A stretch of DNA of 64,000 nt from Macrostomum hystrix (GCA_950097015.1 CATNEN010000038.1:17794001-17858000), one strand, 5' to 3'; counted from the stretch's first letter, positions 11,487-50,155 are shown. Made by a program: numbers and translations. The notes: generated by a model not told the origin, from the sequence alone.

Positions 11487-14400
11487 TCAAACAGTCAGCA
11501 AAATGTAAGAGTTATACTTGGCAATATTCCGTTTGAGAATATCGCCGCAAGGTCCCATGACGCGTTCAAAGCGTTTGCGATCGAGTTTGACGCATTTTAG
11601 CGGGCCGCGAGCAATCACCGTGGCAGCGCGAGGCCGATCTAACAGAAGAGCAATTTCACCTGCGGGAAAATGGGTACTTTTAATTTGTTTGATTGTTTAT
11701 TACAGAACAAATGCAATAAAAAATGAACACCTACTACTTACCAAAGTAGTCTGACGGACCCAGTTTGCCTACTTCGACTGCGTCCTCATTCTCTGACGGC
11801 CTCTGCATGACGGCTGCCACGCCCTGGAAGTAAAAGTACAATTTAGCCGACTTTTTATACAATACTTATCTCAAATAAAATATTAAAACGTACTTGTTTT
11901 TTAATTTATATCTCACGCCTTAAGAGATTAAACCAGACTGAAATCTCACCCCTAAGATATTTAACCAAACCGGAATCTCACCCCTAAGATATTTAACCAA
12001 ACTGAAATCTCACCCCTAAGATATTTAACCAAACTCAAATCTCACCCCTAAGATATTTAACCAAACCGGAATCTCACCCCTAAGATATTTAACCAAACTG
12101 AAATCTCACCCCTAAGATATTTAACCAAACTCAAATCTCACCCCTAAGATATTTAACCAAACTGAAATCTCACCCCTAAGATATTTAACCAAACTGAAAT
12201 CTCACCCCTAAGATATTTAACCAAACTCAAATCTCACCCCTAAGATATTTAACCAAACCGGAATCTCACCCCTAAGATATTTAACCAAACCGGAATCTCA
12301 CCCCTAAGATATTTAACCAAACCGGAATCTCAGCCCTAAGTGATTTAAACAGACTGAAATCTCACCCCTAAGTGATTTAAACAGACTGAAATCTCACCCC
12401 TAAGTTATTTAAACAGACTGAAATCTTACTCCTAAGAGTGAGAATTCCTTTGCACAAAACTGCTTAAAAGGATACAAAATACTTTAAAACTAATCCTTAG
12501 TCCTAGTTTTTACCTCCAAAATGATGAAGAAGTCGTCACCAGCCTCGCCCTGACGCACAACAGCTTCATTGTCTTCGAAGGCCACAGTTTCCAGTGCATC
12601 GGCCACAGTTAGCCGTTCCCACAGATCCAGATTCTCCAGTATTGGCACTTTGCTTAGAAATTCTTCATACATTTTCCGTTTGCGAATGGTGCTACCCATC
12701 AGGATGCGCCTGTAGGAGTCGCGATCGATGCCCCAAAGCTTAACGTCTGTTTTGGCGCGAACCGTGGCAGCCCTGGGCGTCCCGTAGATCAATGCCAATT
12801 CGCCGAAACTGCCGCCTTCGCCAACTGTGCTAACGTATTCGCCGTTGACGTAGATGTCGACCTCGCCTTGGTCTAGGATGTAGAAATTGTCACCCTCGGC
12901 GCCTTGCTCGATGATAACTTCGTTAGCGTTGCGGTGAAGCGGGAACATCGCATCGAAGATGTCACTGGAGTTGCCAAAGAAAGTATGTAAGGATTCGGCA
13001 CACACACACACACACAAACACTGCAACAAGACATTTAAGCAACTCACCTTCGCTCATTATCGTCTAAATGTGAAAACAAAACATTCTTAGCGATTGCCTT
13101 GGACAAAGCTCCCATTGTTTTGTAGTCTTTTGGTACTACCTGGTTAATTGTTAAAATCAAATATGACTTCTTTGAATTTATGACTCTAGCAATGGATTAA
13201 ATATGCCTAAACTTGAACGTTGATTATCAATGGCCGACTCTGAAATACCGAAAACTGAAGGTCAATGACCGATTTTGAAATACTGAGAACTGAAGGTCAA
13301 TGACCGATTTTTGAAATACTGAGAACTGAAGGTCAATGACCGATTTTTGAAATACTGAGAACTGAAGGTCAATGACCGATTTTTGAAATACTGAGAACTG
13401 AAGGTCAATGACCGATTTTGAAATACTGAGAACTGAAGGTCAATGACCGATTTTGAAATACTGAGAACTGAAGGTCAATGACCGATATTTGAAATACTGA
13501 GAACTGAAGGTCAATGACCGATTTTGAAATACTGAGAACTGAAGGTCAATGACCGATTTTTGAAATACTGAGAACTGAAGGCAAATGACGGATTTTGAAA
13601 TACTGAGAACTGAAGGCAAATGACGGATTTTGAAATACTGAGAACTGAAGGCAAATGATCGATTTTGAAATACTGAGAACTGAAGGCAAATGACGGATTT
13701 TGAAATACTGAGAACTGAAGTACAATGACCAATTCTGCAATACTAAGAACTGATCGACAATGACCGATTCTGATATACCCAGAACTGATCGACAATGACC
13801 GATAATGAAATTCCGAAGAACTAAAGGACAGTGACCGATAATGAAATTCCGAAGAACTAAAGTACAATGACCATAGTCTGATCCACTGAAATCTGAAGGT
13901 CAACGGCCGATACAGTGTGATTAAAAGATTCAAGAGTAGGATCAACATAATTGAGCAAACCTTCTTAACATAGCTAGCAGCGTCTTCCTCGGTGTAGACT
14001 TCACCACTGACCGCACCTCGCCGACTGCGCTTCCTCTGTACTGACTGAGCTGGAGCCAACATTGGCGGCAGCATACTCTCGTCGTCGTCATCGATGCCGC
14101 AGGTTCCCGATGGCAAGCCAGCGGCAGCTGAACTAGTTGAGCCAGAATATTTCTGCACTGAAGATGACGGAGCTGAGTAAGCAGACCCAGCTAGTTCAGG
14201 CATTAGGATGCGATTCTGTACAATTGAAAATAACAAATAATTTTAATTACAGTATAGTACGACAGGCAGGTGAAGGCAACAACTTTCTAAAGATATCCAG
14301 AACATAAAAAACTAACTAATGCACCACTCAGAATTTTTTTAATCTGATTATACCTCATTTTTTCTATCTAAATGCATGGAAATCAAATAATGTTACAAGT

Positions 14401-19602: not shown

Positions 19603-20260
19603 GGCAGTGCTTATCCCCATGGTACCGTAGAAATAATTTTTGTCTTATTCCTACGGTATCGTGGGAATAATTTCCTGCTTATCCGCATGGCACACTGACG
19701 AGATAGCTGTCCTATCTTCAACATATTCTGTGGGAATAATTTCCTGCTTATCCACACGGCACACCGTTGAGATAGCTGTCCTATCTTCAGCTATAGACTT
19801 AGAAGGCTTGAGCTATAAGATTAGATAAATACACACTTCAGTTGGATTCTTTTAAATATATAAATAATTGAAATATATATTTTATATACTTAAAAAGCCA
19901 CCGTATTGGGTAACTACTTGCGAAAAAAGCAGAAAACTTTAATTTGTTTACTTGCTTTTAAAAACCAGAAGAAAAAATGAAAATTGCAGTCATGATAAAA
20001 AGATAGATGATAGGACAGCTATCTCGTCAGTGTGCCGTGCGGATAAGCAGGAAATTATTCCCACAGAATATGTTGAAGATAGGACAGCTATCTCTACAGT
20101 GTGCCATGCGGATAAGCAGGAAATTATTCCCACGGAATATGTTGAAGATAGGACAGCTATCTCGTCAGTGTGCCGTGCGGATAAGCAGGAAATTATTCCC
20201 ACGGTACGGTAGGAATAAGACAAAAATTATTTCTACGGTACTGTGGAGATAAGCACTGCC
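19603..20260. mobile_element. MULE-type MITE with ~190-bp TIRs made of ~69-bp subrepeats
   Basis: ggcagtgcttatc.../...gataagcactgcc long inverted repeats. TSD aatttctta / aatttccta (8/9). Same TIR family as 17822-18450. Confidence 0.88.
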
Positions 20261-20414
20261 AATTTCCTATGCAATCTTATCTTTAAATGCCTAATTCGGA
20301 AAATTTAGGCTATTGGTTTTTGGACGCTTTGTAGTCACATTAAATCTCACAAGTCTAAGGTCTTTGGATTCTCTCTATGACTAGCACTGAAACAGGCTGT
20401 AATGGGAATACAAG

Positions 20415-20578
20415 GGGTCCGTGGAAATGCCGAAACGGACGAAACGGACCGAAACGGACCGAAACGAACCGAAACGGGCCGAAACGGACCGAAACGGACC
20501 GAAACGAACCGAAACGGACCGAAACGAACCGAAACCAACCAAAGCGGACCGAAACGGACCGAAACCAACCGAAATGGA
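20415..20578 (+). repeat. Left TIR of MULE: unique tip plus 10-bp tandem array
   Basis: Inverted match to 28990-29167. Confidence 0.92.
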
Positions 20579-21591
20579 CGAATCGGGAGACTTAACTTCA
20601 GAATCTATATGCATATATGTAACGTGTACCTGATGTTGATGTCGGATTTTTTCCCTTTCAAACTCGCGCCTGATTGGGGACTGGGAACTGAAGCCTGATT
20701 AACAAAGTCGGGGGGGGGCGAATAATAACAATAATTGCAGGAGGGCAGTGGGCTCACTGGCGCAGCACGTTTGGCGTCATCGTCCCACAGCCAGCGGGGA
20801 GGCAATTCTGCCCATTCCGCTGACTCCTGGGGGGTTTCTTATGAAAGTATTCTCTATGCTTAATGCTGAAAATGTGCATCAATTAGGCGGAAATTGGTGT
20901 ACATTTTCAGCATAAAGCATATGATATAGGTATTTCTTCTAGCTATTCATGTAACTATTTTCCGGTGTAAATTTCCGGGTTTTACGTTTAAACCTCGTAA
21001 CATCTTTGTGCAGCAACCTCACTCCCCCGTGCTATATCTACGAGCCAATTCTATCGCAAGAAAATTCATCGCTTCATCCCTTTGGTATAAGCTTGCTATA
21101 AGCTAAGCTTGTTGGTATAAGCTTGCCTCCCTTGTCCAGTCCAGCTTTCGCGCCCCGGCCGTGCCTTTTGCCTATTTCGCTTTCTCCGCTTTGCCGCCAC
21201 GTGCGCACGCCAGCTATAGCTTTACTACCCTTTCCACTGGCAGTGCCGATCGCCCCTTTCTCACCTGCCTAGATCCTTTCCATCTGCCTTCCGTCTCTCA
21301 GCTTGTGAGTGAGCGCCCGGTTCCCCCCGGCTAGGCGTGTACTCACCTGTTGTCTGTCGGTTGGCACCTCCCCCTCCCTGCGCTAGCAGGCTCACTGTGT
21401 CCCTTAGCTTAGCTTAGCTAGTCATAGTGAACTTTAGACACCAAATAGCTTTCATTGCACTTAGACTTTAGTCTTTCTGTCTATTTTGACGGTAAATAGC
21501 AACTTTTACATTTATTTATTTAATTATTATAACATATTTACATAGCAAGCATAGAATAGAAAGTCTCCACATTAGCAAATCTCGCTCGGGC

Positions 21592-22236
21592 ATGAGCAGC
21601 AACGGCAGTCGACCTCCGGCCAGGTCTTCAGCGGCATCGGCGTCGAAGAAGCCAGGTGCAGAGCTCATCCCCGGCCCTCCAGCCACTTCATCCAAGCGCC
21701 AGCGGCCGTCGAACTCCCGTGCCAGTCTAGAGTCGGCAGCAGCAGCGGCCGCCAAGAAGCCTAAGGCCGTACCAGGGCGATCCTCGATCCCCGGCCGTCC
21801 CAGCGATTCCAACTGTGCAAGCGACTCCGGTCACGAGAAGATCGTTGAGCACCCGGCCGAGTCTGCTGAGACCGCCGAGACGACCCTCCGAGACGACTCC
21901 CCGATCGAGATAGACACCGACATCGCTTCGGCTGACGGTACCGTTGGAGCCGACGGCGCGAGACCTGAATTTGCGACTCCTCCGACCTCGCCTTCAACTT
22001 CTGGCACCGGTACCGGCAATCTTGAAAGAGTAGTGAGTGGGGAAGCTGTTTCTGCCGCTCCAAGCCCACTTGGTCTAGTGCCCATCAACACCTCGGGTCT
22101 TACCTCCACATCCTTTGTCAATGATCGCTGTCTGGTCGACTACTACCCAAACGCTTTCTCTTCTCTTGCCGATGACCTTCTTGAAACTATCAAATCCGAA
22201 CTAGAGCCAAACATTGTTGTACTCGTAGTACATTAA
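21592..22236 (+). CDS. Orphan S/A/P-rich 214-aa ORF inside the MULE, convergent with the transposase (cargo, second gene, or 5' fragment of a LINE ORF1)
   Basis: ATG-initiated GC-rich non-repetitive ORF preceded by a pyrimidine-rich leader. No domain recognised. Confidence 0.4.
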   Translation: MSSNGSRPPARSSAASASKKPGAELIPGPPATSSKRQRPSNSRASLESAAAAAAKKPKAVPGRSSIPGRPSDSNCASDSGHEKIVEHPAESAETAETTLRDDSPIEIDTDIASADGTVGADGARPEFATPPTSPSTSGTGTGNLERVVSGEAVSAAPSPLGLVPINTSGLTSTSFVNDRCLVDYYPNAFSSLADDLLETIKSELEPNIVVLVVH

Positions 22237-23986
22237 CATTGCGCGCATTGAATTGCTAATACTCTGTAGCGAATTGGCCGCACAAGCCTATCTTACAGCA
22301 TAATCGAATTCAAAACACGAAGGCACAAGGCTTGCAGTAACTATACATGTATCTGAATTGATGAAAATTTATATACCGCCGAAGGTCGACTCCACTAGAA
22401 TTTCAACGATGCTGAAGTACATGTAATAGAATGTTTATACTGTAGTTAATCGATTTTACTCATTGCGCTCCGATATACGTTTTAAAAATAATTTGGAACG
22501 AAAAAATGTAAGATAAAATTATTGAAAGTTTTTTTCGAAAAACGGTTTAGTTAAGAGCAGTTTAATTTCAGCAAGTCAAAGAGACTCAAAGAGATGGTAA
22601 GAAAAAGGCAAACAAAAACCTTTTTGCAAAAAGCATCTTTCATAGACATAAAAGTCAATGTGGTTGATAAATTTGGTTGTGGTTGATAAAAGCGAGGTGA
22701 AGACACTGACAGGTAGTACGAATCTATAAAGTCAATTCCGTTGGGCTGACAAAACGTTACTGGCACAATTTAAAAGCGGCACAAATCGGCAAGTCAAGTG
22801 AGAATAGCAAAAATTGATTAAAAGCAGCAGAACGACAGCAGAAAAAGCAAAACTTATAAGCAAGAATAATGTAAAAATGCAGTGAGCGCCAAAATGTACA
22901 CATGGAAGCCAGCGGTGCAAAATAAAGTGTGCGACCCGACAGCAAGACTTACAGTATATAAAGCAAAACTGACGATCCAAAAGATGGTAAAAAATCTTTC
23001 ACGCGTTTCTTCAGCAGGAAATGTCAGGCAAAATCGACAACTAAAAGCAGCAGATAGCAATACAAAAATAATCAGAACGAAAGTAAGGTAGGTTGGGAAA
23101 CTTATCCCAAAGGAAGAAATTAATTTCCATGAAGCTATTGAGAGAATGTCAGGTGCTTCTCAATGTGGCAGCCACCCAGGGGAATAGCCCACCCAGAACC
23201 GATAGGCTCCGGTGCTTGTGCACTTCTCTCTCTCTCTCTCTCTCTCTTAAATTGCAGCAGCTAAAATCTTTACTTCTTACTCAGTAAAGTAATCAATTAG
23301 CGTTTTACTATACTTGACTCCGTTCACTCAGCAAGGGAATCTGAATTGATGGACTTAAGATACAGTGCATGAATGCAAGGGTGGTTTGGAATCATGTTGG
23401 CCCAATGCTTTGAAATTCATCTTTAGCAAAAAAACATGTTGACACTGGTGGGCTGGTAGACGTTGTTTAGCATGAAATAGAAGTTGAGGTTGCAGTTGAA
23501 GACTAATGGTCCTTATGTGAAGTACATCACATTCATAATAAGCAGGATAAAATAAAATGCAAATGCAAACAGCTTTCCACGACAGCATCATACAGCTAGT
23601 AAGTAGTACATGTATAGTAGGAAACACAGCTGGCAAAAAAATTATTTGCACACTTAAAAATTCCTATATGTACTTACTGTAACAGTCAGACAGTTGCATA
23701 TGAGATGGTAAACAAAAAGTGGCTGGTGCAGTAGAAATATGGTTAGGCAGGGGTAAGTAAATGAACAATAATTGGAAATACAAAGCACACTAGATAGTCA
23801 GTCGTAGGATTACCGTCGCTGTCTATAAAAATGGTCATATGGTTTAGACTGTGATGGTCACTGGCACTGGCATGTGCATGGGATTTCTATCGGGATAAAA
23901 ACGAATATTCGAACTAAGCACACAAATATATAGCTAGAAATGCAGCGCTGCACTTATTCCTGTCATTGTCAAATTAGCTGACACAT

Positions 23987-26368
23987 TTATCGAAACTGAG
24001 TCGCTCGCTCTGCCTTCTGTCGTCGCTTCTGGTGGGGCTTCTTACCAGCAGATGGTTTCCTCATAGTTTTGAACCTGCCATTGGTAGATGTGAACACTCC
24101 TTCATCCTTAATCATTCGAAAGCACTTTTGGAAAGCTGCATCTCTTTGTTTTTTTGACATTTTCTTCCAAGCATCGAGAGTGATTTGATGATGTACATAC
24201 ATACAGGACAGTCGAAACTCGCCAAAGCCGATGAGAGCTCTTTCTGCTTCTAAATGCTGCTGCCTCGATAGCTCCTCCAAGCGAAAAATCAAGTCAGGAA
24301 GGTTTCTTGGTGTCCAACTTATTTTCATCTTCAAAACGTGATTCAGCGACTCAGCATTGTTGGTCGTCCACAAGTGACGCTCGCAGACAATGCTTTCTCG
24401 CAACAGTGGTAGCACGTGTGAGGCACAGTATTTCGCAAATGCTGGGATTGCACTTCGCATTTCATGTATAAGCTGTGCCACAGCAGCATCAAAAACAGTC
24501 ACTGTATTAGAGTTGGCAAGTCCATGTGTACCGAAAATTTGTGAAATAATTTTCTTTCGTTCGTACTTATCAACACCACATGTGTCTGATAGCTGCCTTT
24601 TGGCATTGTCCTTCAAATGCTTTGTACATGCCACTGTAAACGCGTATGGAAAGGAATGCATCATTGCCTTACGCATCCCCAGCTCAGCATCCGATCCAAG
24701 AATAATCTTCTTTTGAGGTGAATGTTCCAGCATCAAAGATAAATGGCTGAAGAAGTAGTTATATGTCGTGGCATCAGAATTGCCATGTAAAAAGATTGGC
24801 CCCATAAAAATGGGGGTATCTCCTGTTGATTTGCGATACAAAGCCAAGTTCTGATACGAACTAGGGGTAACAAAAACAGAGCCCAGATTGTATGTTTTGT
24901 CGAATGACAGTACACTTGCGTTGGAACCGCAGCAGAATTCTTTAACGTCTCGCAGTTGCTTATCTGTGTACAGAACAGCGCAAGGCGGCCTTCCATGTGG
25001 GTGAATTACATGTCGTACAAATTCATTCATTTGAAGCATTTCAACGACAGCCAACCACTCGTCTGCAGGGTTTGCGAATGGCACCCTGTGCCCCGAAGCA
25101 TTTTTACGATTTGCATCTCTTAATTGTTGAAGATTACGAGGAGACTTCTCACTCTCTTCCAAATTGTCCTTCACTAACTTAGCATAAACTTCTCTAGGTG
25201 GAAGCGACTTCAGCATCTCCTTCATTTTCTGTATAGTTTCTTCTGGTGTTCGAATGAAGTGTGAATCTTCTGCACTATCGTTCCCATGCTGCTTGTGTCC
25301 TGGGAATGTACCTGCGTATTCAAAAATGGCAATTGAGTGTGCTGCACTCTCAATCCAAGTAATCCGGCGACGATAGCTCGAAGCAGATTGTGAGCCAAAT
25401 TTCAAACTTGAATAATGGTGCACAAAAGTAACAACGTCTTCCTTCAATGGCTGTGGAGATAGTGGAACATAGTAGCGTTTGTTACTGCACTGAAATTCAG
25501 TGCAGTATTTTTCTTCTTTACGATGCAATCGAGATCCAAGACGATTACTTGCACATAAATATGGAACTCTAATAGTAGGCGAATTTGATGAGACCCACGC
25601 TCCACAGTCATCCCAAAAAAGGCTTTTCTTGCCACCCAGTCGACGCTGTATATTGTCAGTGTTGTCAACCACGAAGTATACATTGTCCTTTTTTCCAGTC
25701 GGAACTGATTTTAGGGCATTCTCTATCCCGGTTGTAGTCAAAACCTCATAAACTTTTTGGCCAGACATGAATTTTCCTCCTGGTAGACTAGAATCAGTTC
25801 CATAATCAGTAAACAGGTTTGACTCGTCGGCGATGTAATCATTCTTCCTCTTTGCATTCTTTGGATCTGAGTCAGAATTGGATTGCTTCTCATCATCGGT
25901 GCTCATTGATTCGTCCGCTCTTCTTCTTGTGTCCTTGTACTTCTTTCTTTTTGACTTCTGCGAACTTGAAGTGCCATTCTCCTCCACCCCAGCATCATCG
26001 CCTGCAGCTTCATTCTCTCTCTTTGTGCCTTTCTTCTTCTTTGACTTCTGCGAACTTGAAGCGCCACTCTCCTCCACCCCAGCATCATCGCCTGCAGCTT
26101 CATTCTCTCTCTTTGTGCCTTTCTTCTTCTTTGACTTCTGCGAACTTGAAGCGCCACTCTCCTCCACCCCAGCATCATCGCCTGCAGCTTCATTCTCTCT
26201 CTTTGTGCCTTTCTTCTTCTTTGACTTCTGCGAACGCGTCTTGTCCTTGTCCCCCACTCCAGCACCATTGTCATTCGCTGCCTCTTCACTTTCCTGCGCA
26301 TTCTTCTCTTCAGCCCTCCTCGCATGCGACTCACCTTCGTCACTCCCAACTTCACCATCCTTTCGCCA
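23987..26368 (-). CDS. MULE/Mutator-family DDE transposase (frame open from 26368; no dedicated early ATG)
   Basis: SFDKTYNLG (D, 24899-24901), LGSDAE (D, 24689-24691), CTKH (CxxH, 24617-24628), TTNNAESLNHVLK (E, 24350-24352). N-terminal 90-bp x3 K-rich repeats and a basic C-terminal tail. Confidence 0.9.
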   Translation of the reverse strand, partial: WRKDGEVGSDEGESHARRAEEKNAQESEEAANDNGAGVGDKDKTRSQKSKKKKGTKRENEAAGDDAGVEESGASSSQKSKKKKGTKRENEAAGDDAGVEESGASSSQKSKKKKGTKRENEAAGDDAGVEENGTSSSQKSKRKKYKDTRRRADESMSTDDEKQSNSDSDPKNAKRKNDYIADESNLFTDYGTDSSLPGGKFMSGQKVYEVLTTTGIENALKSVPTGKKDNVYFVVDNTDNIQRRLGGKKSLFWDDCGAWVSSNSPTIRVPYLCASNRLGSRLHRKEEKYCTEFQCSNKRYYVPLSPQPLKEDVVTFVHHYSSLKFGSQSASSYRRRITWIESAAHSIAIFEYAGTFPGHKQHGNDSAEDSHFIRTPEETIQKMKEMLKSLPPREVYAKLVKDNLEESEKSPRNLQQLRDANRKNASGHRVPFANPADEWLAVVEMLQMNEFVRHVIHPHGRPPCAVLYTDKQLRDVKEFCCGSNASVLSFDKTYNLGSVFVTPSSYQNLALYRKSTGDTPIFMGPIFLHGNSDATTYNYFFSHLSLMLEHSPQKKIILGSDAELGMRKAMMHSFPYAFTVACTKHLKDNAKRQLSDTCGVDKYERKKIISQIFGTHGLANSNTVTVFDAAVAQLIHEMRSAIPAFAKYCASHVLPLLRESIVCERHLWTTNNAESLNHVLKMKISWTPRNLPDLIFRLEELSRQQHLEAERALIGFGEFRLSCMYVHHQITLDAWKKMSKKQRDAAFQKCFRMIKDEGVFTSTNGRFKTMRKPSAGKKPHQKRRQKAERATQFR
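25945..26235 (-). repeat. Three in-frame 90-bp repeats (SQKSKKKKGTKRENEAAGDDAGVEESGASS) in the transposase linker
   Basis: Directly visible, near identical. Confidence 0.9.
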
Positions 26369-27124
26369 TCATTCCTCGAGTCGTCAACTCGTGAGTTCTC
26401 ACTATAGTCCTCTGCCCCCTCCTCATCCATCTCAACACTTGTTGGTGACTCATGTGTTGCATCGACTATTCGTATGAGTGGAATGACATGGTTCGCAACG
26501 AGTGCAGTTGCCTTGGCTGGAACGTGCGAAAAGTGAGACCACATTAATGTGATTACCGGACTGCATGGACGGCGGACACCACGACCACACACAAGGCGTG
26601 TGTATGGATGCTGGTCACAAGAAATAAGAGCATTTGGTGGATGATATGACTGAATCGCTTTACCAATGGCAGCACTCAGTGCAAAGAAGTGAATCATCTC
26701 TGCATAGGAGCCAGGAGTAACAGCACTCATCATTACATCTAGAAATGGCACTGGTGTATAGATCCGACAGTCATTTATTAGATCAGTAAAGTTTGCTGCT
26801 TCCAAATCATAGAATGATCTGTTGTCAATCAACTCTAGCCCAATTCGCAAACGAAGGTACAGATGGTGCTCCTGTGTGCCATAGAGAGCCAGGGAGGCTG
26901 CACGATAAAAACAGTTGCCATCCCCAGCAACAGCTGCAGGGTGGTACAAATTGAGTACACATGGCTGGAACAGCAGCAAAATCTTCTTGGCAATATCATC
27001 AGTACCAGTCTTATCGGTGCCAGCATTTCCAAAGATGACCTCTTGAAGTTGTGGTTCTACAAAGTATGTCGCCAGCAGAAGTTGTTCGCGCTCACTAGCA
27101 GACATAGCCACTGAAGTCTGTAGC
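26335..27124 (-). CDS. Exon encoding vertnin-like OTU-fold cysteine protease domain of the MULE protein (raw ORF runs on to 25903)
   Basis: Cys box GDGNCFYRAAS (C at 26911-26913) and His box NHVIPL (H at 26488-26490). Acceptor tttcag|G at 27125/27124 is in phase with the PHD exon. Confidence 0.82.
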
Positions 27125-27465
27125 CTGAAATTGTTGAAACAAAAGAAAGTAGCAACTTTTATGTTGAATTTGAGCTAGCTGACTTGCAAAATCCACTGGA
27201 AATGCTTTATACAAGTTTATCAAGATTTCTATCATGCACTATAGCAGACTGTAGCAGTTCTCAATCTGAGCTTTATGATACATTTAGAATTGCATGTAAT
27301 CTATTAAGAGAATGTAGAAAAATGATCCAGATATGAGTAATTCCTTGAATATGTCATATGACAGTGAAGTTGAAGTTTTAGTTTTCCTTTGCAACTACTT
27401 ACTGCTTACTACTATACTACTAAGTACAGTATATATTTTTTTCCCATTTTTTTATCAAAAGCCCT

Positions 27466-27856
27466 TAGGGTAAAACATCATCAACCAAACCATTCAAGAG
27501 AAATGAAAGTCATATTTATCTTTCATGTGATTCTTCCTAACTATTTTATTCATTTGTTATGATATTTCAAGTTCTATGATGCCTTTACTATGCCAAAATG
27601 AAAAACAGAACATCGGATTCTTTGTTCAGCTTGACAATGCATGAAAATTGTTGCTTGGTTTTGATAGAAAGTGGTCTATTACCTCTTTCAACTTAATTAA
27701 CTGCTTTGGATAAAACAATATTCTTCAAAAAGAAAAATATTAACTTTCTGCAACTTTGGGTTAGCTTCACTTTGATATGAAGCATACTGAAAGTTTAATA
27801 AAAGGTTGAATATATAAAATCATTGATTTCTTGTTTGGTTGATGACTTTTACCCCA
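27466..27856. mobile_element. MITE-like element nested in MULE intron
   Basis: Imperfect ~24-bp TIRs gggtaaaacatcatcaaccaaac / gtttggttgatgacttttacccc. TSD not resolved. Confidence 0.55.
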
Positions 27857-27918
27857 TTCTCTATTTTTATAGAATATGCTTTCCACCATTTTATATCACT
27901 GTTGATGAAGAAGCCCAC

Positions 27919-28075
27919 TAGAGTTCAGTTCCACCATAACTAAAATTTTCCCATATCCATATCTATATCCATAACCTCTTAATTTTCCCATAGCCTATCC
28001 ATATCCATATCTTTTATGAAAAAATCCATATCTGTAACTTCTCATAGACATATCCATAGCTATGGCAGAACTCTA
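27919..28075. mobile_element. 157-bp hAT-type MITE nested in MULE intron
   Basis: TIR tagagttc / gaactcta. Perfect 8-bp TSD aagcccac (27911-27918, 28076-28083). Internal atatcc repeats. Confidence 0.8.
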
Positions 28076-28323
28076 AAGCCCACCATTTGTAAGGTCTACT
28101 CTCTCTAGCACTACCACAAAGAACATCAATTTGATTCTAATCAAGATGCAAGTCATAGGCCTAGGGACTAGCATAAGTCATAAGGGAAGAATCTTAAGAT
28201 AGACAAAATGTATAATTTTATATACATCTGGTGGGGCACAGCACTGTGATTAGGCCACGAGGCCCCTGCAGCAATAGAATTTTGTGAATTTAATATGAAG
28301 ACCACACTACAGCATTTACTCAC

Positions 28324-28544
28324 CTAGAGAGAGCACCCTGAATGTCATATCCTCCATCGTTGATGTGGACACACGTGGGACAAAGGAAGTCTGCATTTGA
28401 GGAATCCCACTTAGCAAACAACACTTCGCTCATTGCAAGACATGTTCGATGGCTCCAACACTGGCATCCACAACAATAGATTGTATCGTCAGCGCATTCA
28501 AGACCACACCCAGTGCAGGGGTACATAGGACTCCGAATCCTCAT
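28324..28544 (-). CDS. PHD-finger exon (first coding exon of the MULE gene)
   Basis: C4HC3 pattern CTGC..CCGCQCWSHRTC..FLCPTC. Donor AG|GTGAGT at 28324/28323 is phase 2 and matches the acceptor at 27124. Confidence 0.85.
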
Positions 28545-28989
28545 AGCACACTGCTAGGATCTTTACCGTCTTGATTGAAATGTGGCTTGGTGATTTGATA
28601 GTCTGCACGTGGCGGTCCAAAATCGAATACTGTAAGTTTAATTTGTTAACTGCTCCTGTAAGTTAGTTTAAACAAAGTGTTGCACAAAGAACTCACGATT
28701 GATTTGAAAAAGCGTATGGTATGTAAACTGAAGCTTCTTTTAAAACGACCCGTAATAGTATACAATAAGCAAGGGTTGAAATTCTATTCTAAGCACAAAG
28801 GCAATGACGACTCGATATATGCAACTGCAACGGCATTACAAAATACAGAAAACACACACCCTAATATCGCACGTACGGTAGCTATTGATCGCACTCCCTC
28901 ACACCGATGTTGCTTCACTTTGCACGGCGGATGCTTTAATCAGCCATAGTTTGCCCTCGATCAATAATTTTGTCATTTTCAGGTTCCAG

Positions 28990-29167
28990 TTGGTCCGTTT
29001 CGGTTTGTTTCGGTCCGTTTCGGTCCGTTTCGGTTTGTTTCGGTCCGTTTCGGTCCGTTTCGGTTTGTTTCGGTCCGTTTCGGTCCGTTTCGGTCCGTTT
29101 CGGTCCGTTTCGGTCCGTTTCGGTTTGTTTCGGCCCGTTTCGTCAGTTTCGGCATTTCCACGGACCG
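28990..29167 (-). repeat. Right TIR of MULE
   Basis: (cggtccgttt)n followed by cggcatttccacggaccg. Confidence 0.92.
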
Positions 29168-30175
29168 GGAATACAAGTCCCCAACAGACTATAGTGGGTC
29201 CATGGAACTAAGGCAGTCGATTTTTTATCTAGTTTTTTATCTCATATGTCATGGCTTGAAGAGCTTTGCTGATTTTTAGCTCATATTTGTTTTAATTTAA
29301 CTTAATTTAAGAAACATAACAGTAAAACAAACAGGCATGGTTTTGGAGCAAAATGTGTTTGTTGCGGACTAATAGCAGAGCACTCTGGCTCTTTGTTCTT
29401 TGTCTTTGTTTTTATTGTACATTTTCAGCTTTTTAGACACTGCTAATTTGATCATCTCAGTCTCAAGATTTATTTTTTTATTGGCAGTGCTTGTCCCCAG
29501 ATACCATTGTAATAAGTGTCATACTGTTAGAATAATAAATCTGAACTCAATCAAATTTTCCTAATTTAATTACAATACACACATTTGGTGCCATTTAGTG
29601 ATAGCAGTTTGTGGCATTCTATTGTGTTTACATGGGCAAATCAGCAAAAGGTAGAGATCATCAGAATTTTTGTTGTTATAGCTGGATGATGGATGTTTAC
29701 ATTTTTAGTAGAATTTTAAATAGGATATTATTTACAAAAATGTTACAATTTACAATGTTTATAATTTACAAAAAAATTGTTGTAAATGAATTCTAGTTAA
29801 TTAATGCCCCCTAAATTAAAATAACTAAGAGTAGAATAGTTAAAAATAGTTTTTTAAATTTATGATTGTTGTTATCTTGGCAGTTTTTTCACTTAATCTA
29901 CTGGATTTACAGGAAGTAGAACAGAAGTGTTAAAATCAAACATATTACATGATTAATTACTTGCTCAAAATGTATTAATCAATTAAGTACCCATTTTAAA
30001 TCAACTATTCGAATGGTTAATGAGCTATCTGGTTTGATAATTTCGTTTTGTTGTCATATTACATTTTTTGTTACTCATCATTACTTTGGGACTGGTGACT
30101 AGGCATCCAACTATTTTTTCTGACAATCTTTGTGAATGTTTTAAAACCAAACTTTTTCCAATTTATCAATAAAAT

Positions 30176-33100
30176 ATGACAATTAGCTCTTCGAATTCAT
30201 CTCTGTTGTCAGTGGCCGAGAAGGAGCTGGAGTGGAAGACGGCCCTCAACCAGCAGGTCGCCCTTCTAGAAGAAACCCTAGCCAATCGGGAGGCTGAGCT
30301 AAAAGACGAGCATAAAAAGTCGGCCCAATTAACAGAGGATTTCAAATACAATTTGCGCCTTGTAAGAGAAAGAGATGAAGAACTGGGTGCCATGGAACGC
30401 GAAAACATTGTGCTGAAGCAGCAGTGCCTAGCTTTGGAAGACAAACTGTCTGCTGTGAGTGTGAAACACGACGAATGTGTTCAGAAGCTGGCCGAGGAAT
30501 CGCATGCGCATTCTCGCTTAGTTGAGCACAGCAAATCTGAGCAGGACTCGCGAGAACGAGAGCTGCAATTGTTGAGACACGAGCACGAACTAGAATTATC
30601 AAGGCTGCGGGATGAGCATCAGGTGTGAAAATTGATGATTGACAAGCAGCATTTGTTGAGTCATTTATTAAAATCGTTTATTGTATGTCTTAAACGCTTC
30701 TTTATTGATATTTAACTTTAGCACACACGCACACAGATACTGTACGCAGGCATACGCTCACACAAATGTGTACATCTGCCCTGCACTTTCACTGTGCCTT
30801 AGAGATTGGCCCTCAAGCGCGTAAATTACACGACAAGCCCCCAAGCCTTCTCTCCGCGACTGCGCCCCAAATGAATGTGGCCTCGCCGCTGAATCGAGCT
30901 CAGGGAAAAGTTTCTACCTACAGATACTACTGGGTTGGTTTTACAGCATGATTATAGTGTCTGCTAGGAGCAATCTCATGGATTCAAATTATTTCCCTTG
31001 GCTGACATTTTTTGAATCTTCTATACCTTTATTAAATAGTTAAGCTGTAATAACTGTAGCTTCCTGCACAATTTTCTTTGACCCCTATCAACCGACAGGC
31101 TCTTCGTCGTCAGCTAGAGATTGAGAATATTCGCTGCAAAAAGGAGCTGGAACTGCAGAAGCGCGAACTGCTCGGCTCGCTAGACCGGCGAGTTGATGAG
31201 ATCCGGGACGACTATCAGAATCGGGCCAGGCAGATGGAGAAGTCGCTGTTAGATAGCGAATTGAAATGCGACCTATTGGATAAGGAGGCTGCCAGTCTGC
31301 GTAAAGCGCGACTGGATCTACTCAACAGACTTGAGACCTGCGAGACTGAAGCTGCTCAACTGGAGAAACGGTTAAGCGAAGCTGCTGCTAGGTGAGAATT
31401 TTCGTTTCTTTTTTTATTTCGTTGACACGTGAGCACACATACTCACAGGTGAGTGGCGGAGCGGTTCCACTGTGTGAACGTGTGTTAAGTCAGCGGAATG
31501 GGCAGAATCGATCGGCTCCTCGCTGGCTGCGGGTCTACTGACAATAAATTATGTACCAGTACCCACGGCACTTGAATAATCAGAACTATAATATCGGCCC
31601 TGAAGGACGAGGGAATCGGCCCTGAAGGACGAGGGAATCGGCCCTGAAGGACGAGGGAATCGGCCCTGAAGGACGAGGGATTCGGCCCTGATGGATGAGG
31701 GATTCGGCCCTGAAGGATGAGGGATTCGGCCCTGATGGATGAGGGATTCGGCCCTGAAGGATGAGGGATTCGGCCCTGATGGATGAGGGAAACGGCCCTC
31801 AAGGATGAGGGAATCGGCCCTGAAGGATGAGTGAATCGGATCTACAGTATAAGGTCCTGAGGAATGAAGAAATCGGCCCCTGAAGGATGAGGAAATCGGC
31901 CCTGAAGGATGAGGAAATCGGCCCCTGAAGGATGAGGAAATCGGCCCCTGAAGGATGAAAGAATCGGCCCCTGAAGAAATTTTTTCAAACTAATTTACGT
32001 ATATTTAGCCTATCAACTTTAATCACGACCTCAGATACGAAAGCGACATAGCCGTATTAGAAAACGAGAAGGAGCGTCTCCAAGAGCTCATAGCTTCCCT
32101 AGAGGCCAATCATCGATCCGCTATTAGTCGACTAGAAGAAAAATTAGCCGCCGCTCAGACTGAAGCAGCCAGGCAAGATCAAAGCAATGCCGCCACTGCG
32201 GCCAAATTAAAAGAGGAACGACAGACGGTGCGGAGGCAGACGGCTGATTTGTTGGCTAAACTGCACGAAGCTGAAGCCAGCTTTCAAAGGAAGGCTACGG
32301 ACTTTGATAGCGACCTTCGGGCCAAGGATGCCCATATTAGAGGGCTTAATGACCAGGTAAGATTTTCGTACTTTTCCTGACAACGTGTAAGTTCGTGTGC
32401 TTGCTCAGGCATAGATCTCTGAATAGAGAACTTAAGAGACAACTTCCCGCCAAACCCACATTTTCCTGGGGTAGGCTGACTTACTGTCCTAAAAATACAC
32501 TGAGCAGATCAGCAAAAAATTATAGGATTTATTCAGCTTTCTAATAATAAAAAACCTTGAAAATATGTTGCCTGATACGAAAATAATTTCTACATTCAGA
32601 GCTCAGGTGTCGCAAGCTGAACATTTAGGAAAGTCTGCATTATATCAATTTCTGTTTATAATTTTACGTTTCCTAAATCGATATCAATCAACCAATCAGA
32701 TTGAAGATCTGCAGGCGCAGTTAAGCGCTTCCAAGGCCGATGTCAGTCGACTGTTCGTTGACAAAGACGCAGAAATTGATCGGTTAAAGCGAAATAATCA
32801 GAGCATTGCTGAGGAATTAAATCATCGACGCGCCGATATTGACAAGTGAGACTTTTATTGTTAATGACAATTATTATCCCTAGCTTTGGAGTTCAATCCC
32901 ATAAAATGTCAATCCGTCCCACGCATTTAATTAAAATCCCTAAAAATGGCGATTAATTCCCTGCAATAAAATGAAATCCCTAAAATAGAGTGAAATCCCA
33001 AGGGATACATTCCATCCCAAGAATCAGATTGAAATCCCAAACAGGACATTCCATGCCAAGAATCAGTAGAGTGAAATCCCAAAGAGGACATTCCATCCTA

Positions 33101-36100
33101 AGTATCAGTAGAGTGAAATCCCAAGGGGGGACATTCCTTCCCAAGAATAAGTAGAGTGAAATCCCAAGGGGGGACATTCCTTCCCAAGAATCAGTAGAGT
33201 GAAATCCCAAGGGGGGACATTCCTTCCCAAGAATAAGTAGAGTGAAATCCCAAGGGGGGACATTCCTTCCCAAGAATAAGTAGAGTGAAATCCCAAGGGG
33301 GGACATTCCTTCCCAAGAATCAGTAGAGTGAAATCCCAAGGGGGGACATTCCTTCCCAAGAATCAGTAGAGTGAAATCCCAAGGGGGGGCATTCCTTCCC
33401 AAGAATCAGTAGAGTGAAATCCCAAGGGGGGCATTCCTTCCCAAGAATCAGTAGAGTGAAATCCCAAGGGGGGACATTCCTTCCCAAGAATCAGTAGAGT
33501 GAAATCCCAAGGGGGGACATTCCTTCCCAAGAATCAGTAGAGTGAAATCCCAAGGGGGGCATTGCTTCCCAAGAATCAGTAGAGTAAAATCCCAAGGGGG
33601 GCATTCCTTCCCAAGAATCAGTAGAGTGAAATCCCAAGGGGGGACATTCCTTCCCAAGAATCAGTAGAGTGAAATCCCATGGGGGGGACATTCCTTCCCA
33701 AGAATCGGAGTGTCGAAAATATCAAGACCTTATCATGCCGCACAATGTATCTCGAATATGACAGCAAATCCCAACTGACAATGTACTTGACAGGTACCGG
33801 CAGGAGCTGGAGGCCGCTCTAGCCAGGGAGCGCGATCGCGACAGCCAGCAGCAGCAGATGGAATTGGACTATCAAAGGAAGGCTGGCGAATTAGAGGCGC
33901 TACAATACGAGAAATCAGAGGCCTACATTGAGCGCCTAACTAAGGCTAGAAACCAAGCTTTAAGAGAACTGGAAGCATTGCAGACAACCCTGCAACAGAA
34001 GCAGACTTTTATACAGAGCCTATTGAAAGATAGAGAGGCCGCATTGCAGGCAATGAAAGAACATGGCATTGTTATTCCGGAGCGTCAGCTAAATTCGGTG
34101 ACCACCTCGGCTATTGAAGCCAGTCAATTAGCTGCTAGCGAGCGTCGGGTTCGGGAACTAGTTGAACAGAATGAGGCTCTGAAAGAGATTGTCAAACAGA
34201 TGCGTTTAGAGATGGAATCTTTGACCGGATCTCAGCAGCAGCAGCAGCAGCAGCAGGCACAGAAAGACAAGATCTATCTTGGCGACGCGAAATCCGCTCA
34301 GGAGGTGTCAAACGCGTTATCGAAGCTTCGCAGCGAGAAGACCGACCTATTAGCCCAGTGCCGCAAACAGCAGGCTCGCATTAATCATTTAGAAAGTCGC
34401 CTAGCCGAATGCCAGACAGAGCGAGAATCGGCTGACACGGCGGCTGAACAGATGCGCTACGAGCTATCAGCCAAGGAGCGGCATCACTCAACTGAGCTGG
34501 CCAGTTTGAAGCGTCGATTAAACGAAGCCGAGACTCAATTAGACGAGAGCCAACGTGAAGCTGACGAATATTACAAAGCTAATATAGAGGCTAATAGATT
34601 AGTTGATAAGCTGCAACAGGAGCTGCTGTTCTTGAAAGGCGGCGGCGACCAACGGGTCAGGCCTGGCGAAGTGAACTTCGGCGCCCAAGAATTATACATT
34701 CAACAGCTGCAAGACGAGATTGCCAGTTTGCGAGATAGAATGAGAGCCAAACAGTTGTATGGAGATGGCCCTGAAGATGAGGCTAGCAATGAGAGTGAAC
34801 AGGTGAGAATTGTTTCATTCGCGTTCTTAATACTCAATTTTCGCGAAATTTGCTTTTCTCCCCTTCCCCCTTTTCTCCACTTTCAATTTTTTTCCTTTCC
34901 CCACTTCCTCCCCTCACCCATTTCATCCTCTTCCCCATTTTCTTCCATCTACATTCCCTCCCCTTCCCTATTTCCTCCTCTTCCCTATTTCTTCCTCTTT
35001 ACCATTTTCTCCCCTGACCCATTTTATTTTTTCCCGTTTTCTTCCATCTATAATTATACATTCCCTCCCCTTCCCTATTTCCTCCTCTTCCTATTTCTTC
35101 CTCTTCCCCATTTCCTCCTCTTTACCATTTTCTCCCCTGGCCCATTTTCTTTTTTCCCATTTTCTTCCATCTACATTCCCTCCCCTTCCCTATTCCCTCC
35201 CCTTCCCTATTTCCTCCTCTTCCCCATTTCTTCCTCTTCCCCGTTTAACCTCTTCCACATTTCCTACCCGTCTAAATATTCTTTCTCTCCCTTATTTCTT
35301 CCATATCCCATTTTCTTCCCCTTCCTCATTTTCTCTTCTTTCCCATTTCCTCCACTTTTAAATTTCCTTCCTCTCCCCATTATCTCTTTCTTCCCATTTT
35401 CTCCCCTACTATTTTCTCCATATTTTTCTTGGTTTTTCTTTTTTCTATTTTTTTCCTCTTCTTTTTCTTTGTTCCATTATTCGACGAAAAATCTGTCAAA
35501 ACTAAGGCTATTAATTAACAAATTACCTAACACTCTCAGGTAAGCCGCCTTCGAGCCAAGCTGAAGATGGCAGCCAATCAAATCAAAAAGCTGGCCCAGG
35601 AGAATCAGGCCCTAGTAGATTTGTCCAATCGGCTGCGAGCTGAGGCCAATAAGAAGCAATCAGGGGCTGCAACCCAGACCTACGCTGGGCCGGTTGGTCG
35701 GTACAGGCCAACTCGCCAGCAACAGCAACAGCAGCAGCAGCAGCATGGCGAGCCCATAGAACTAGAGTCGCATTCTCGACGAGCAGTTAAAGACGCTGTC
35801 GGCGATATGACTAGCAAACTGGCCCAATTGGAAAGAATGCAATATTATCTAACTAGAGAGGAATTGGCTAGAAATAACTCTCAGCAACAACAACAACAGC
35901 AGCAGCAGCAGCAGCAGTCGTCAATGAACATGGGCGATAGTCTGCCAGTGAAAGACACAGCTGGTGGCGGTCCATTGCGCCGTGCCGTGGGTCTTGAATC
36001 GGCGACTGCAAATAATCCCAATAGGGATAGTCTAAATTTATCCTCAGTTGGCGGCGGAGAATCTCTGAGAGACGTCTGGCGCTTGTTGGATTCTCACCAG

Positions 36101-36259
36101 CAGCAGCAGCAGCAGCAGCTGGAGTCTGAGGACTACAATGCCAGTCAGGTCAGCGGTGGCGCCGGGTTAAGAAATCAGGCCCTTCAATCGCTGCAAATTC
36201 GAGGCAGGCGCGCAGCCGCTAATCAACGCTTCGTTGACGATGTTGAAGACGATTTGTGA
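30176..36259 (+). CDS. CCDC57: Coiled-coil domain-containing protein 57, 6 exons join(30176..30622,31099..31391,32035..32356,32700..32845,33794..34802,35540..36259), ~978 aa
   Basis: Motifs recognised from CCDC57 (KELEWK, EDFKYNLRLVRERDEEL, DIDKYRQEL..ARER..LDYQRK..KSEAYI, LSNRLRAE). All introns are GT-AG and in phase. AATAAA at ~36395. Confidence 0.88.
30815..30905 (-). mobile_element. SINE fragment (same family as 1513-1800) in CCDC57 intron 1
   Basis: cacgacaagcccccaagcc..ccaaatgaatgtggcctcgccgc matches the reverse complement of ~1560-1640. Confidence 0.7.
31450..31580 (+). mobile_element. Internally deleted SINE copy in CCDC57 intron 2
   Basis: A-box tggcggagcggtt plus shared 3' block ctcctcgctggctgcgggtc. 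Confidence 0.6.
31592..31976. repeat. 22-bp minisatellite (ccctgaaggatgagggaatcgg), reverse-complement relative of the 37.2-50.2 kb array
   Basis: Direct comparison of units. Confidence 0.93.
32975..33706. repeat. 43-bp minisatellite in CCDC57 intron 4
   Basis: aatcccaaggggggacattccttcccaagaatcagtagagtga, about 16 copies. Confidence 0.95.
34850..35475. repeat. Polypyrimidine low-complexity tract in CCDC57 intron 5
   Basis: Almost G-free C/T-rich sequence with internal duplications. Confidence 0.85.
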
Positions 36260-49200: not shown

Positions 49201-50155
49201 TCCTTCAGCGCCGTTTCCCTCATCATTCAGGACCGATTCCCTCATTATTCAGGGCCGATTCCCTCATCATTCAGGACCGATTCCCTCATCATTCAGGACC
49301 GTTTCCCTCATTATTCAGGACCGATTCCCTCATCATTCAGGACCGTTTCCCTCATCCTTCAGCGCCGATTCCCTCATCCTTCAGGACCGATTCCCTCATC
49401 CTTCAGGACCGTTTCCCTTATCCTTCAGGACCGATTCCCTCATTATTCAGGGCCGATTCCCTCATCCTTCAGGGCCGATTCCCTCATCCTTCAGAGGCGG
49501 ATTCCATCATCCTTCAGGACCGATTCCCTCATCCTTCAGGGCCGATTCCTTCATCCTTCAGGGCCGATTCCCTCATTATTCAGGACCGATTCCCTCATCC
49601 TTCTGGACCGATTCCCTCATCCTTCAGCGCCGTTTCCCTCATCATTCAGGACCGATTCCCTCATTATTCAGGGCCGATTCCCTCATCCTTCAGCGCCGTT
49701 TCCCTCATCATTCAGGACCGATTCCCTCATTATTCAGGGCCGATTCCCTCATCATTCAGGACCGATTCCCTCATCATTCAGGACCGTTTCCCTCATTATT
49801 CAGGACCGATTCCCTCATCATTCAGGACCGTTTCCCTCATCCTTCAGCGCCGATTCCCTCATCCTTCAGGACCGATTCCCTCATCCTTCAGGACCGTTTC
49901 CCTTATCCTTCAGGACCGATTCCCTCATTATTCAGGGCCGATTCCCTCATCCTTCAGGGCCGATTCCCTCATTATTCAGGATTGATTCCCTCATCCTTCA
50001 GGACCGTTTTCCTCATCCTTCAGAGGCGGATTCCATCATCCTTCAGGACCGATTCCCTCATCCTTCAGGGCCGATTCCTTCATCCTTCAGGGCCGATTCC
50101 CTCATTATTCAGGACCGATTCCCTCATCCTTCTGGAACGATTCACTCATCCTTCA
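37212..50155. repeat. ~13-kb 22-bp minisatellite (ccctcatccttcaggaccgatt variants) with 1122-bp higher-order repeat
   Basis: About 590 units. Rare variant gatcgatt at 39701, 40823, 41945 and at 47052, 48174 (spacing 1122 = 51 x 22). Confidence 0.98.

Follow-up and report, generated by a model that had tools for sequence, protein, structure and literature searches.

Introduction

Why would a DNA transposon encode a candidate histone reader and a putative ubiquitin protease in the same gene as its transposase? This question is raised by an element at positions 20415-29167 of a 64,000-nucleotide stretch of the Macrostomum hystrix genome (GCA_950097015.1, CATNEN010000038.1:17794001-17858000), which was analysed at its full length and is referred to here as the window. 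The original prediction, made from the sequence alone, described the element as an intact foldback Mutator-like transposon with a PHD finger, an OTU-like protease and a DDE transposase. Our analysis makes it likely that the element is a very young cut-and-paste DNA transposon of the Mutator superfamily (Mutator-like element, MULE), with a PHD-OTU-transposase gene and an OTU domain predicted to act in trans; the claim that the window copy is intact did not stand. The features of the element are listed in Table 1.

Results

The element has exact ends and has moved recently

The boundaries of the element were defined by a perfect 10-bp target-site duplication (TSD), GGAATACAAG. The two TSD copies lie directly outside positions 20415 and 29167, and the coordinates first proposed for the element are therefore exact. 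The inverted arms at 20416-20574 and 29008-29166 are 89% complementary over 159 nt (approximately 165 nt for the full arms) and consist of tandem 10-bp units of the type CGAAACGGAC, the left arm having about 15 units and the right arm 16-17. Both ends share the same outermost 21 bases (GGTCCGTGGAAATGCCGAAAC). Thus, both the inverted termini and the perfect TSD of about 10 bp that had been proposed are present.

Copies of the element were sought in the species' own assembly (220 Mb, 42 contigs). The DNA search revealed four full-length copies, located on contigs C38 (the window copy), C25, C1 and C32. Each copy is flanked by its own TSD (GGAATACAAG, TTGTTTTTTA, CTCACAGGC and CCCAATACGG); three of these are 10 bp in length and one, CTCACAGGC, is 9 bp. 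The terminal 21-mer occurs exactly eight times in the genome, corresponding to four copies with two ends each, and there are therefore no solo ends and no short derivatives; the reversed pattern used as a control was found 0 times. Pairs of copies differ by 4-11 substitutions in approximately 8.7 kb (0.05-0.13%), meaning they are 99.9% alike, and they also vary in the number of 10-bp and 90-bp repeat units. A protein search with the transposase part identified no older, diverged relatives in this genome, only the four copies and one marginal match, in agreement with a recent arrival or burst.

The C32 copy is inserted inside a member of an abundant foldback family of miniature inverted-repeat transposable elements (MITEs), and an uninterrupted member of this family lies in the window at 19603-20260. 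The uninterrupted member reads ...CAAGTAGTTA CCCAATACGG TGGCTTTTT..., with the 10-mer CCCAATACGG present once, whereas on C32 the same 10-mer stands on both sides of the element. The uninterrupted MITE thus represents a paralogous empty site for C32 and supports the TSD and the exact ends of that copy; it is also the outcome of the empty-site search that the original prediction had proposed as a check. Taken together, the termini, the 10-bp TSD and the four dispersed, near-identical copies demonstrate recent transposition, with staggered target cuts of 9-10 bp.

The MITE at 19603-20260 has arms of 187 nt that are 94% complementary and are composed of 69-bp tandem units; the family has at least 40 scored copies in the genome, at 83-95% identity. 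The element in the window lies 155 bp from a MITE copy and its C32 sibling lies inside one. Two of the four insertions are therefore in or beside this family, far above the chance expectation for a family of such size.

The element carries a single gene, and the window copy is frameshifted

The coding capacity of the element resides in a single minus-strand gene composed of a PHD exon, an intron of 1.2 kb, an OTU domain, a linker and a MULE DDE core (Table 1). Exons 1 and 2 were searched apart, using either the intact sibling open reading frame (ORF) or pieces of the window gene in place of the joined protein. The exons join in frame across the GT-AG intron that had been proposed, and splicing is predicted to give ...GALS-R|L-QTS... 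at the junction. Directly behind their PHD finger, 17 relatives carry the motif G-x-(F/Y)-(D/N)-(F/Y)-x-x-(A/S)-L-x-R-L, uninterrupted within one protein (e.g. P0008 and P0005); the predicted splice therefore recreates a conserved motif, rebuilding its AL-x-R-L part as ALS-R|L. The remaining parts of the proposed gene were also recovered: the OTU Cys and His boxes are intact, the Lys-rich and acidic linker is present in the form of a 90-bp (30-aa) tandem repeat, and the D-D-CxxH-E core of the transposase is complete. A search for AATAAA on the minus strand within 2.4 kb past the stop codon found none, which is uninformative.

The predicted two-exon product of the sibling copies is approximately 1,118-1,148 aa in length. 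The protein of about 1,120 aa originally proposed thus holds for the siblings but not for the window copy, in which a private 1-nt deletion places the OTU and transposase frames one base out of register. In the window, the OTU frame (ORF 25903..27111; 402 aa) overlaps with the transposase frame, which is open from position 26368 and comprises 793 codons (756 aa). The siblings have one more T after position 26360, giving A4 compared with A3 on the coding strand, and their exon 2 is a single ORF of 1,040 aa (C25) or 1,070 aa (C1 and C32, each with one extra 30-aa linker unit). Two further coding changes are private to the window copy, namely a 3-nt insertion at 26749-26751 that adds a Val to the OTU domain, and a Leu at 25123, where the siblings and the family consensus have Val.

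We considered whether the window copy might be truly intact, either through an assembly error at the base after 26360 or through a 41-nt GT..AG mini-intron (26334..26294) that restores the frame. The missing base falls in a short A run, the contigs obtained from public runs over this site all carry the extra base, and AAG|GTGAGT at 26335/26334 is a consensus donor that, if spliced to the AG at 26295-26294, would bring both frames into register. However, the A run is merely 3 versus 4 bases long, the public contigs cannot tell the four copies apart, and the two other private coding changes are what is expected of a real divergent copy. The mini-intron meets two further objections: a 41-nt intron is very short for an animal, and in the siblings the same 41 nt are ordinary in-frame coding sequence. 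An intact window copy is accordingly unlikely, although it survives better than any of the other alternatives discussed below, and from the sequence comparison the deletion is probably real. If so, the window copy can yield no more than a PHD-OTU protein that ends in an out-of-frame tail, and its siblings would have to provide the transposase. Since it keeps both ends, such a copy could be moved in trans by its siblings.

The OTU domain is conserved and is predicted to act in trans

Relatives of the protein were identified by a word-indexed search, which returned 25 (down to E 3e-182), and by an exhaustive search, which returned 4,483 cluster representatives at E <= 0.001 and 430 at E <= 1e-30. 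A word-indexed search with the OTU part alone (residues 1-240) returned no matches, a blank that belongs to the method and is not evidence. When the family profile was compared with PDB sequences, matches to OTUD1 (E 2.4e-8), OTUD7B and OTUD5 were obtained. An AlphaFold (AF2) model of the first 260 residues of exon 2 had a mean predicted local distance difference test (pLDDT) score of 84, and a Foldseek search with this model retrieved OTUD1, nairovirus OTUs and OTUD5 (TM-score of 0.6-0.7 by target length) together with OTUD3, all at a probability of 1.00. The OTU fold family comprises deubiquitinases. The catalytic Cys, in the box G-D-G-N-C, was kept in 64 of 65 relatives and the His in 63 of 64; the Pfam OTU family (PF02338) matched 18/26 and 25/51 relatives. 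In the atlas, the domain neighboured clusters of molluscs, cnidarians and fungi that were either unnamed or labelled OTU; vertnin did not appear among the matches listed. Sequence and model together identify the domain as a real OTU-fold cysteine protease, by homology, with conserved Cys and His.

The PHD finger was examined in the same way. Residues C10, C13, C23, C26, H31, C34, C55 and C58 form a C4HC3 set of ligands, with W29 two residues before the His. In a phmmer search, exon 1 retrieved 17 relatives (down to E 1e-14) that have a homologous PHD finger ahead of their OTU domain; most of these retain the C4HC3 pattern and some are N-terminally truncated. The Pfam PHD model matched 11/51 relatives, with a best E of 5e-6. 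The PHD and OTU segments, like the MULE segment described below, thus passed family-level profile or fold tests, as the original prediction had expected of all three.

An OTU protease fused to a transposase could act in trans on other proteins or in cis on its own polyprotein, which would then be split between the PHD-OTU part and the transposase. Self-processing of this kind is known for certain OTU or papain-like proteases of RNA viruses, and the linker between the PHD-OTU and transposase halves is long, disordered and variable. Babu et al. (2006, PMC1702500) also proposed self-cleavage for MULE transposases of Medicago, in which an OTU-superfamily protease lies at the C terminus. Against this, the linkers of 68 relatives range from 32 to 489 aa and have no conserved site (22 contain GG and 3 contain [LIVM]xGG), and the closest folds are cellular and viral deubiquitinases. 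We therefore favour deconjugation in trans, on the basis of the linker sequences, which share no common Gly-Gly type site, and of the modelled fold; the absence of such a site also makes self-processing the least favoured of the candidate functions first proposed, the others being promoter targeting, removal of ubiquitin marks and self-protection, and we regard it as distinctly improbable.

The transposase belongs to the Mutator superfamily

The transposase part was assigned using profiles, catalytic motifs and fold. Pfam MULE (PF10551) matched 49/51 relatives (best E 6.8e-9) and Transposase_mut (PF00872) matched 33/51 (best E 3.9e-9). The D, D, CxxH and E positions were invariant or nearly so across the 51 relatives. 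The transposase model had a mean pLDDT of 86.5, and its best fold match was the IS256-family transposase ISCth4 (Foldseek E 2e-7; VIA Z 13.0, root-mean-square deviation 5.6, 228 residues aligned), which also came first in a search independent of Foldseek. The cores of the P element, Hermes, RAG1 and retroviral integrase followed ISCth4 among the fold matches. Three domain-level traits, namely the triad with its C/DxxH motif, the Pfam models and the IS256-like fold, combine with the long terminal inverted repeats (TIRs) and the TSDs of 9-10 bp, within the 8-11 bp of the superfamily, to place the element in the Mutator/MULE superfamily.

At the N terminus of the transposase part lies a beta-rich domain (25280..25786) that is conserved in all relatives and was modelled with a pLDDT above 90. 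Pfam found nothing in this domain, and its fold matches, obtained with the domain as part of a larger model, were middling: SSR4 with Z 8.2 and the GCM domain on DNA with Z 6.8. MULEs have been described with a WRKY-GCM1-type DNA-binding domain (PMC1702500), and the modelled fold is compatible with such a domain without amounting to proof. In protein-language-model space, the nearest atlas neighbours of the domain (L002:4876-5448) were clusters of CG-1, the CAMTA DNA-binding domain, with a score of 0.91, 189 shared features and low recognition; the motif order DG..W / h.Y / RR..W / hh.Y is, by eye, common to both. Pfam CG-1 matched 1/51 relatives (E 0.047), hhalign gave no significant similarity (P 0.15) to the only CG-1 piece in this genome, a divergent one, and the PDB searched by sequence gave nothing. 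Kinship with CG-1 is a lead only.

Within this setting we also considered whether the element belongs to the Rehavkus group and not to canonical Mutator. Rehavkus elements are foldback transposons whose long inverted termini hold tandem repeats; they also have 9-bp duplications, a single ORF and a PHD finger (PMC6446971; 10.1101/2024.12.02.626372). The present element shows all four of these traits. The catalytic motifs speak against it. Those of Rehavkus (DATGS, vvTDfS and C-x-AHf; PMC6446971 supplement) differ by eye from FDKTYNLG, GSDAELG and CTKHLKDN in the present element, and the latter fit Pfam MULE and Transposase_mut. We judge membership of Rehavkus improbable, more so than self-cleavage, and retain the assignment to canonical Mutator.

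The PHD-OTU-transposase layout is maintained across phyla

The PHD-OTU module recurs in relatives of the element. OTU lies ahead of the transposase in 68 of the 74 relatives with at least 200 residues before the transposase part, and 17 relatives have PHD, OTU and transposase in the same order. All three domains are present in proteins from Lingula anatina (XP_013388573.1), Branchiostoma floridae (XP_035685260.1) and Styela clava (XP_039247589.2), and in a B. lanceolatum protein misannotated as PIN4; LOC135209391 of Macrobrachium nipponense has OTU and transposase only. The named relatives are otherwise annotated merely as uncharacterised proteins. Conservation of this order in brachiopods, cephalochordates and tunicates shows that the element has maintained its accessory module. 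A chance capture of host exons, in the manner of Pack-MULEs, would leave the PHD and OTU parts without a role for the element, but this alternative is very hard to sustain. MULEs often capture host fragments and this one carries one apparent fragment (ORF 21592..22236). However, homologous PHD, OTU and transposase parts keep the same order in different phyla although their identity is down to 27-40%, about 98% of relatives retain the catalytic Cys and His, and both the PHD and OTU parts are present in all sibling copies as well as in distant relatives.

A proposed role for the PHD-OTU module

The conserved layout suggests a mechanism in which each part of the protein would have its own task. 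The beta-rich domain would bind the 10-bp terminal repeats, whose period is approximately one helical turn of DNA; the Lys-rich linker units may carry nuclear-localisation signals; and the PHD finger would tether the protein to histone H3 tails. The OTU domain would then serve as an isopeptidase for ubiquitin or a ubiquitin-like modifier, working in trans on the chromatin at which the element resides or inserts. Such activity could dampen host responses that depend on ubiquitin, for example damage signalling at the DNA break made in excision or insertion, the repressive ubiquitination of histones, or the breakdown of the transposase. Liu and Wessler (2017, as cited in 10.1101/2024.12.02.626372) reported that foldback termini with a larger number of tandem repeats are bound more strongly by transposase and excised more, and the variation in repeat number among the present copies fits this report. 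Transposon OTU and Ulp1 domains have been suggested to act on DNA-repair factors (Bao et al., PMC2836005). The role suggested for transposon proteases is a 15-year-old speculation, and, as a guess, a role in DNA repair ranks equally with chromatin de-repression and with self-protection against degradation.

A more specific reading, which we advance only tentatively, is that the PHD-OTU module is a self-contained chromatin tool. Guided to the element's own 10-bp terminal arrays by the DNA-binding domain of the transposase, and to histone tails by the PHD finger, it would strip a ubiquitin or ubiquitin-like mark from histones or repair factors and thereby keep the element accessible or steer repair of the break. 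Plant VANDAL elements encode sequence-specific anti-silencing proteins. If the reading is true, the module would be an animal, enzyme-based counterpart of these proteins.

Several observations weigh against our overall interpretation of the element. The protease activity of the OTU domain, its substrate and the binding of histones by the PHD finger are predictions from sequence and models. In the OTU domain, the third catalytic residue is missing from its usual place at His+2; an Asn or Asp precedes the His in 60/64 relatives. The window ORFs alone gave Pfam scores of 18.9 bits for OTU, 19.6 for Transposase_mut, 17.3 for MULE and 16 for PHD, so that each single match of the window sequence falls under the curated cut-off; the domain assignments are instead supported by the family as a whole, by the profile search and by the folds. 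Transcription and the splice are predicted only: four small public runs from one study, none recorded as RNA, gave low-depth genomic contigs over 23900-28700 (4,801 letters), in which the intron was covered and no joints were found. An assembly error within a short A run could also account for the 1-nt deletion; the low-depth contigs do not resolve the four copies.

The last of these points concerns the predicted complex between OTU residues 36-225 and the genome's own ubiquitin, which favours ubiquitin as the substrate but with a weak score. This complex scored 0.58 compared with 0.03 for the best control, with at least 69% of contacts in agreement between runs and a partner pLDDT of at least 82, and the verdict of the tool was 'weak support'. 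The pass mark is reached by 51/78 solved complexes and 2/108 mismatched pairs, and scores of 0.60 or below are given by only 5 of the 78 solved complexes and by all 4 passing mismatches (of 180 counted). The pass is thus a weak one and may also reflect memory of solved OTU-ubiquitin complexes.

Other features of the element and its surroundings

The 3.4 kb between the left end of the element and the stop codon contain a piece of a dispersed repeat and a 214-aa ORF on the opposite strand (Table 1). The segment at 20721-20829 is probably part of a short dispersed repeat carried in the element. The intron holds a piece of another repeat (27498-27854, approximately 330 nt), which is about 73% identical to two loci on C39 and C1. 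ORF 21592..22236 was evaluated as a functional second gene and rejected: it resembles only the N-terminal leader of AlkB-domain ORFs located elsewhere in the genome, it stops where AlkB would begin, and it is read as a fragment. A tblastn search for the AlkB core found no catalytic part in the element, and the ORF has no Pfam family. It may be a captured or decayed fragment. The AlkB-domain ORFs on contig C1 (L036:2707-5382 and L037:2001-4619; 891 and 872 aa) encode an AlkB-type 2OG-Fe(II) oxygenase together with CCHC zinc knuckles and have several paralogues in the genome; Pfam 2OG-FeII_Oxy_2 matched with E 9e-30 (L036 alone tested). They resemble the first ORF of a retroelement that has a nucleic-acid demethylase.

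One flank of the element carries a cAMP-kinase-regulatory-subunit-like gene with a cyclic-nucleotide-binding domain (12490-14236, minus strand). A multi-exon coiled-coil gene with poly-Gln runs lies at 30176-36259 on the plus strand, with its first coding exon starting at 30176, and the element is situated approximately 1 kb upstream of it. MULEs favour the 5' regions of genes, and the position of the element fits this preference, as a single case. Further along the window, positions 38000-50000 form a 12-kb block with a G+C content of about 0.55 and a strong asymmetry between strands, the GC skew being about -0.5 and the AT skew about -0.3, which looks like a long satellite or low-complexity array.

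Table 1. Coordinates of the element and its features, numbered from the first letter of the window
Feature	Position	Strand	Details
Left TSD	20405..20414	.	GGAATACAAG; matches 29168-29177
Whole element, 8,753 bp	20415..29167	gene on -	Four genomic copies; eight terminal 21-mers
Left TIR	20415..20582	+	Terminal GGGTCCGTGGAAATGCCGAAAC then ~15 tandem 10-bp units; unit number varies among copies
Piece (~106 bp) of unrelated dispersed repeat	20721..20829	.	At least 30 genomic copies at ~84% identity
214-aa ORF, opposite strand	21592..22236	+	34% identity over 129 aa to L036:2707-5382
Stop codon of transposase frame	23987..23989	-	C-terminus fits family consensus GKKPxQxKR
DDE core	24338..24904	-	D FDKTYNLG 24881-24904; D GSDAELG 24677-24697; CxxH CTKHLKDN 24605-24628; E NNAESLNH 24338-24361
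N-terminal beta-rich domain of transposase part	25280..25786	-	Motifs KDNVYFVVDN, DDCGAW, YRRRITW, IFEY
Linker	25851..26300	-	Tandem 90-bp (30-aa) units, Lys-rich and acidic (SQKSKKKKGTKRENEAAGDDAGVEESGASS); one unit more in C1 and C32
1-nt deletion private to window copy	26360..26361	-	Three siblings and contigs of runs X1 and X2 carry T
Start of exon 2 with OTU domain	26479..27124	-	Cys box GDGNC 26911-26925; His box ANHVIP 26479-26496
GT-AG intron, 1,199 nt	27125..28323	-	Donor AG|GTGAGT; acceptor tttcAG|G at 27125/27124; in-frame join
Exon 1, start codon and PHD finger	28324..28544	-	ATG at 28544; 73-codon exon; C4HC3 spacing
Right TIR	28990..29167	-	~16-17 tandem 10-bp units
Right TSD	29168..29177	.	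GGAATACAAG; perfect 10-bp match to left TSD

Comparison with known systems

The idea of a transposon with its own protease for ubiquitin or ubiquitin-like proteins is not new; the arrangement described here differs from those already known. No description of an N-terminal PHD-OTU module on a MULE transposase was found in the full-text literature, a search that lay outside Repbase and Dfam, and within that scope one refuting condition of the original prediction, an earlier description of this architecture, did not arise. Two surveys of MULE diversity mention neither OTU nor any protease (PMC6446971, PMC13359780).

The nearest comparison within the superfamily is with the MULEs of plants, Hydra and lancelet that carry Ulp1 (Arabidopsis KAONASHI/VANDAL20, melon CUMULE and the Hydra/Branchiostoma MuDR elements; PMC2836005). 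These are likewise Mutator elements with long TIRs and an accessory deconjugating cysteine protease, sometimes beside a PHD finger. In contrast to their Ulp1, the protease here has an OTU fold and is N-terminal to the transposase, and no Ulp1/C48 family was present among the Pfam matches of 26 or 51 relatives. OTU-superfamily and PHD domains have each been reported on MULE transposases, the former at the C terminus in Medicago and the latter at the C terminus in Ciona and C. elegans (PMC1702500); there, the domains are separate, C-terminal and from other lineages, and the combined N-terminal PHD-OTU module is absent. Rehavkus differs in the motifs of its catalytic core, compared by eye, and OTU is not mentioned for it (PMC6446971; 10.1101/2024.12.02.626372). 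The closest solved folds, ISCth4 (PDB 6xgx, 6xg8) for the transposase and OTUD1, OTUD5 and nairovirus OTU for the protease, share just 13-21% identity with the protein, and ISCth4 is a bacterial transposase with no PHD or OTU part.

Helitrons are rolling-circle elements with a Rep/helicase and without a DDE transposase, TIRs or target duplication, and in these respects differ from the element described here. Animal Helitrons are alike in carrying a transposon-borne OTU-like cysteine protease (cited in PMC2836005). Ginger1, also of invertebrates, carries OTU (pfam02338) or Ulp1 fused to a DDE transposase, and one of its families has Ulp1 together with PHD (PMC2836005); it differs in having a Gypsy-integrase-like DDE core and C-terminal accessory domains, and it belongs to another superfamily.

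At least three unrelated superfamilies of DNA transposons have independently gained ubiquitin or ubiquitin-like proteases, with Ulp1 in MULEs, OTU or Ulp1 in Ginger1 and OTU in Helitrons. To our knowledge, nobody has shown what these transposon-borne proteases do. The conservation of the catalytic residues across phyla argues that the protease matters to the element, and the present family offers a practical system for this question, with four copies about 0.1% apart, three open frames, exact ends and an empty-site proxy. It also includes a natural frameshift copy that separates the PHD-OTU part from the transposase. Compared with the Ulp1-MULEs, Ginger1 and the Helitrons, the M. hystrix element is set apart by an OTU protease that stands, with a PHD finger, ahead of a Mutator transposase.

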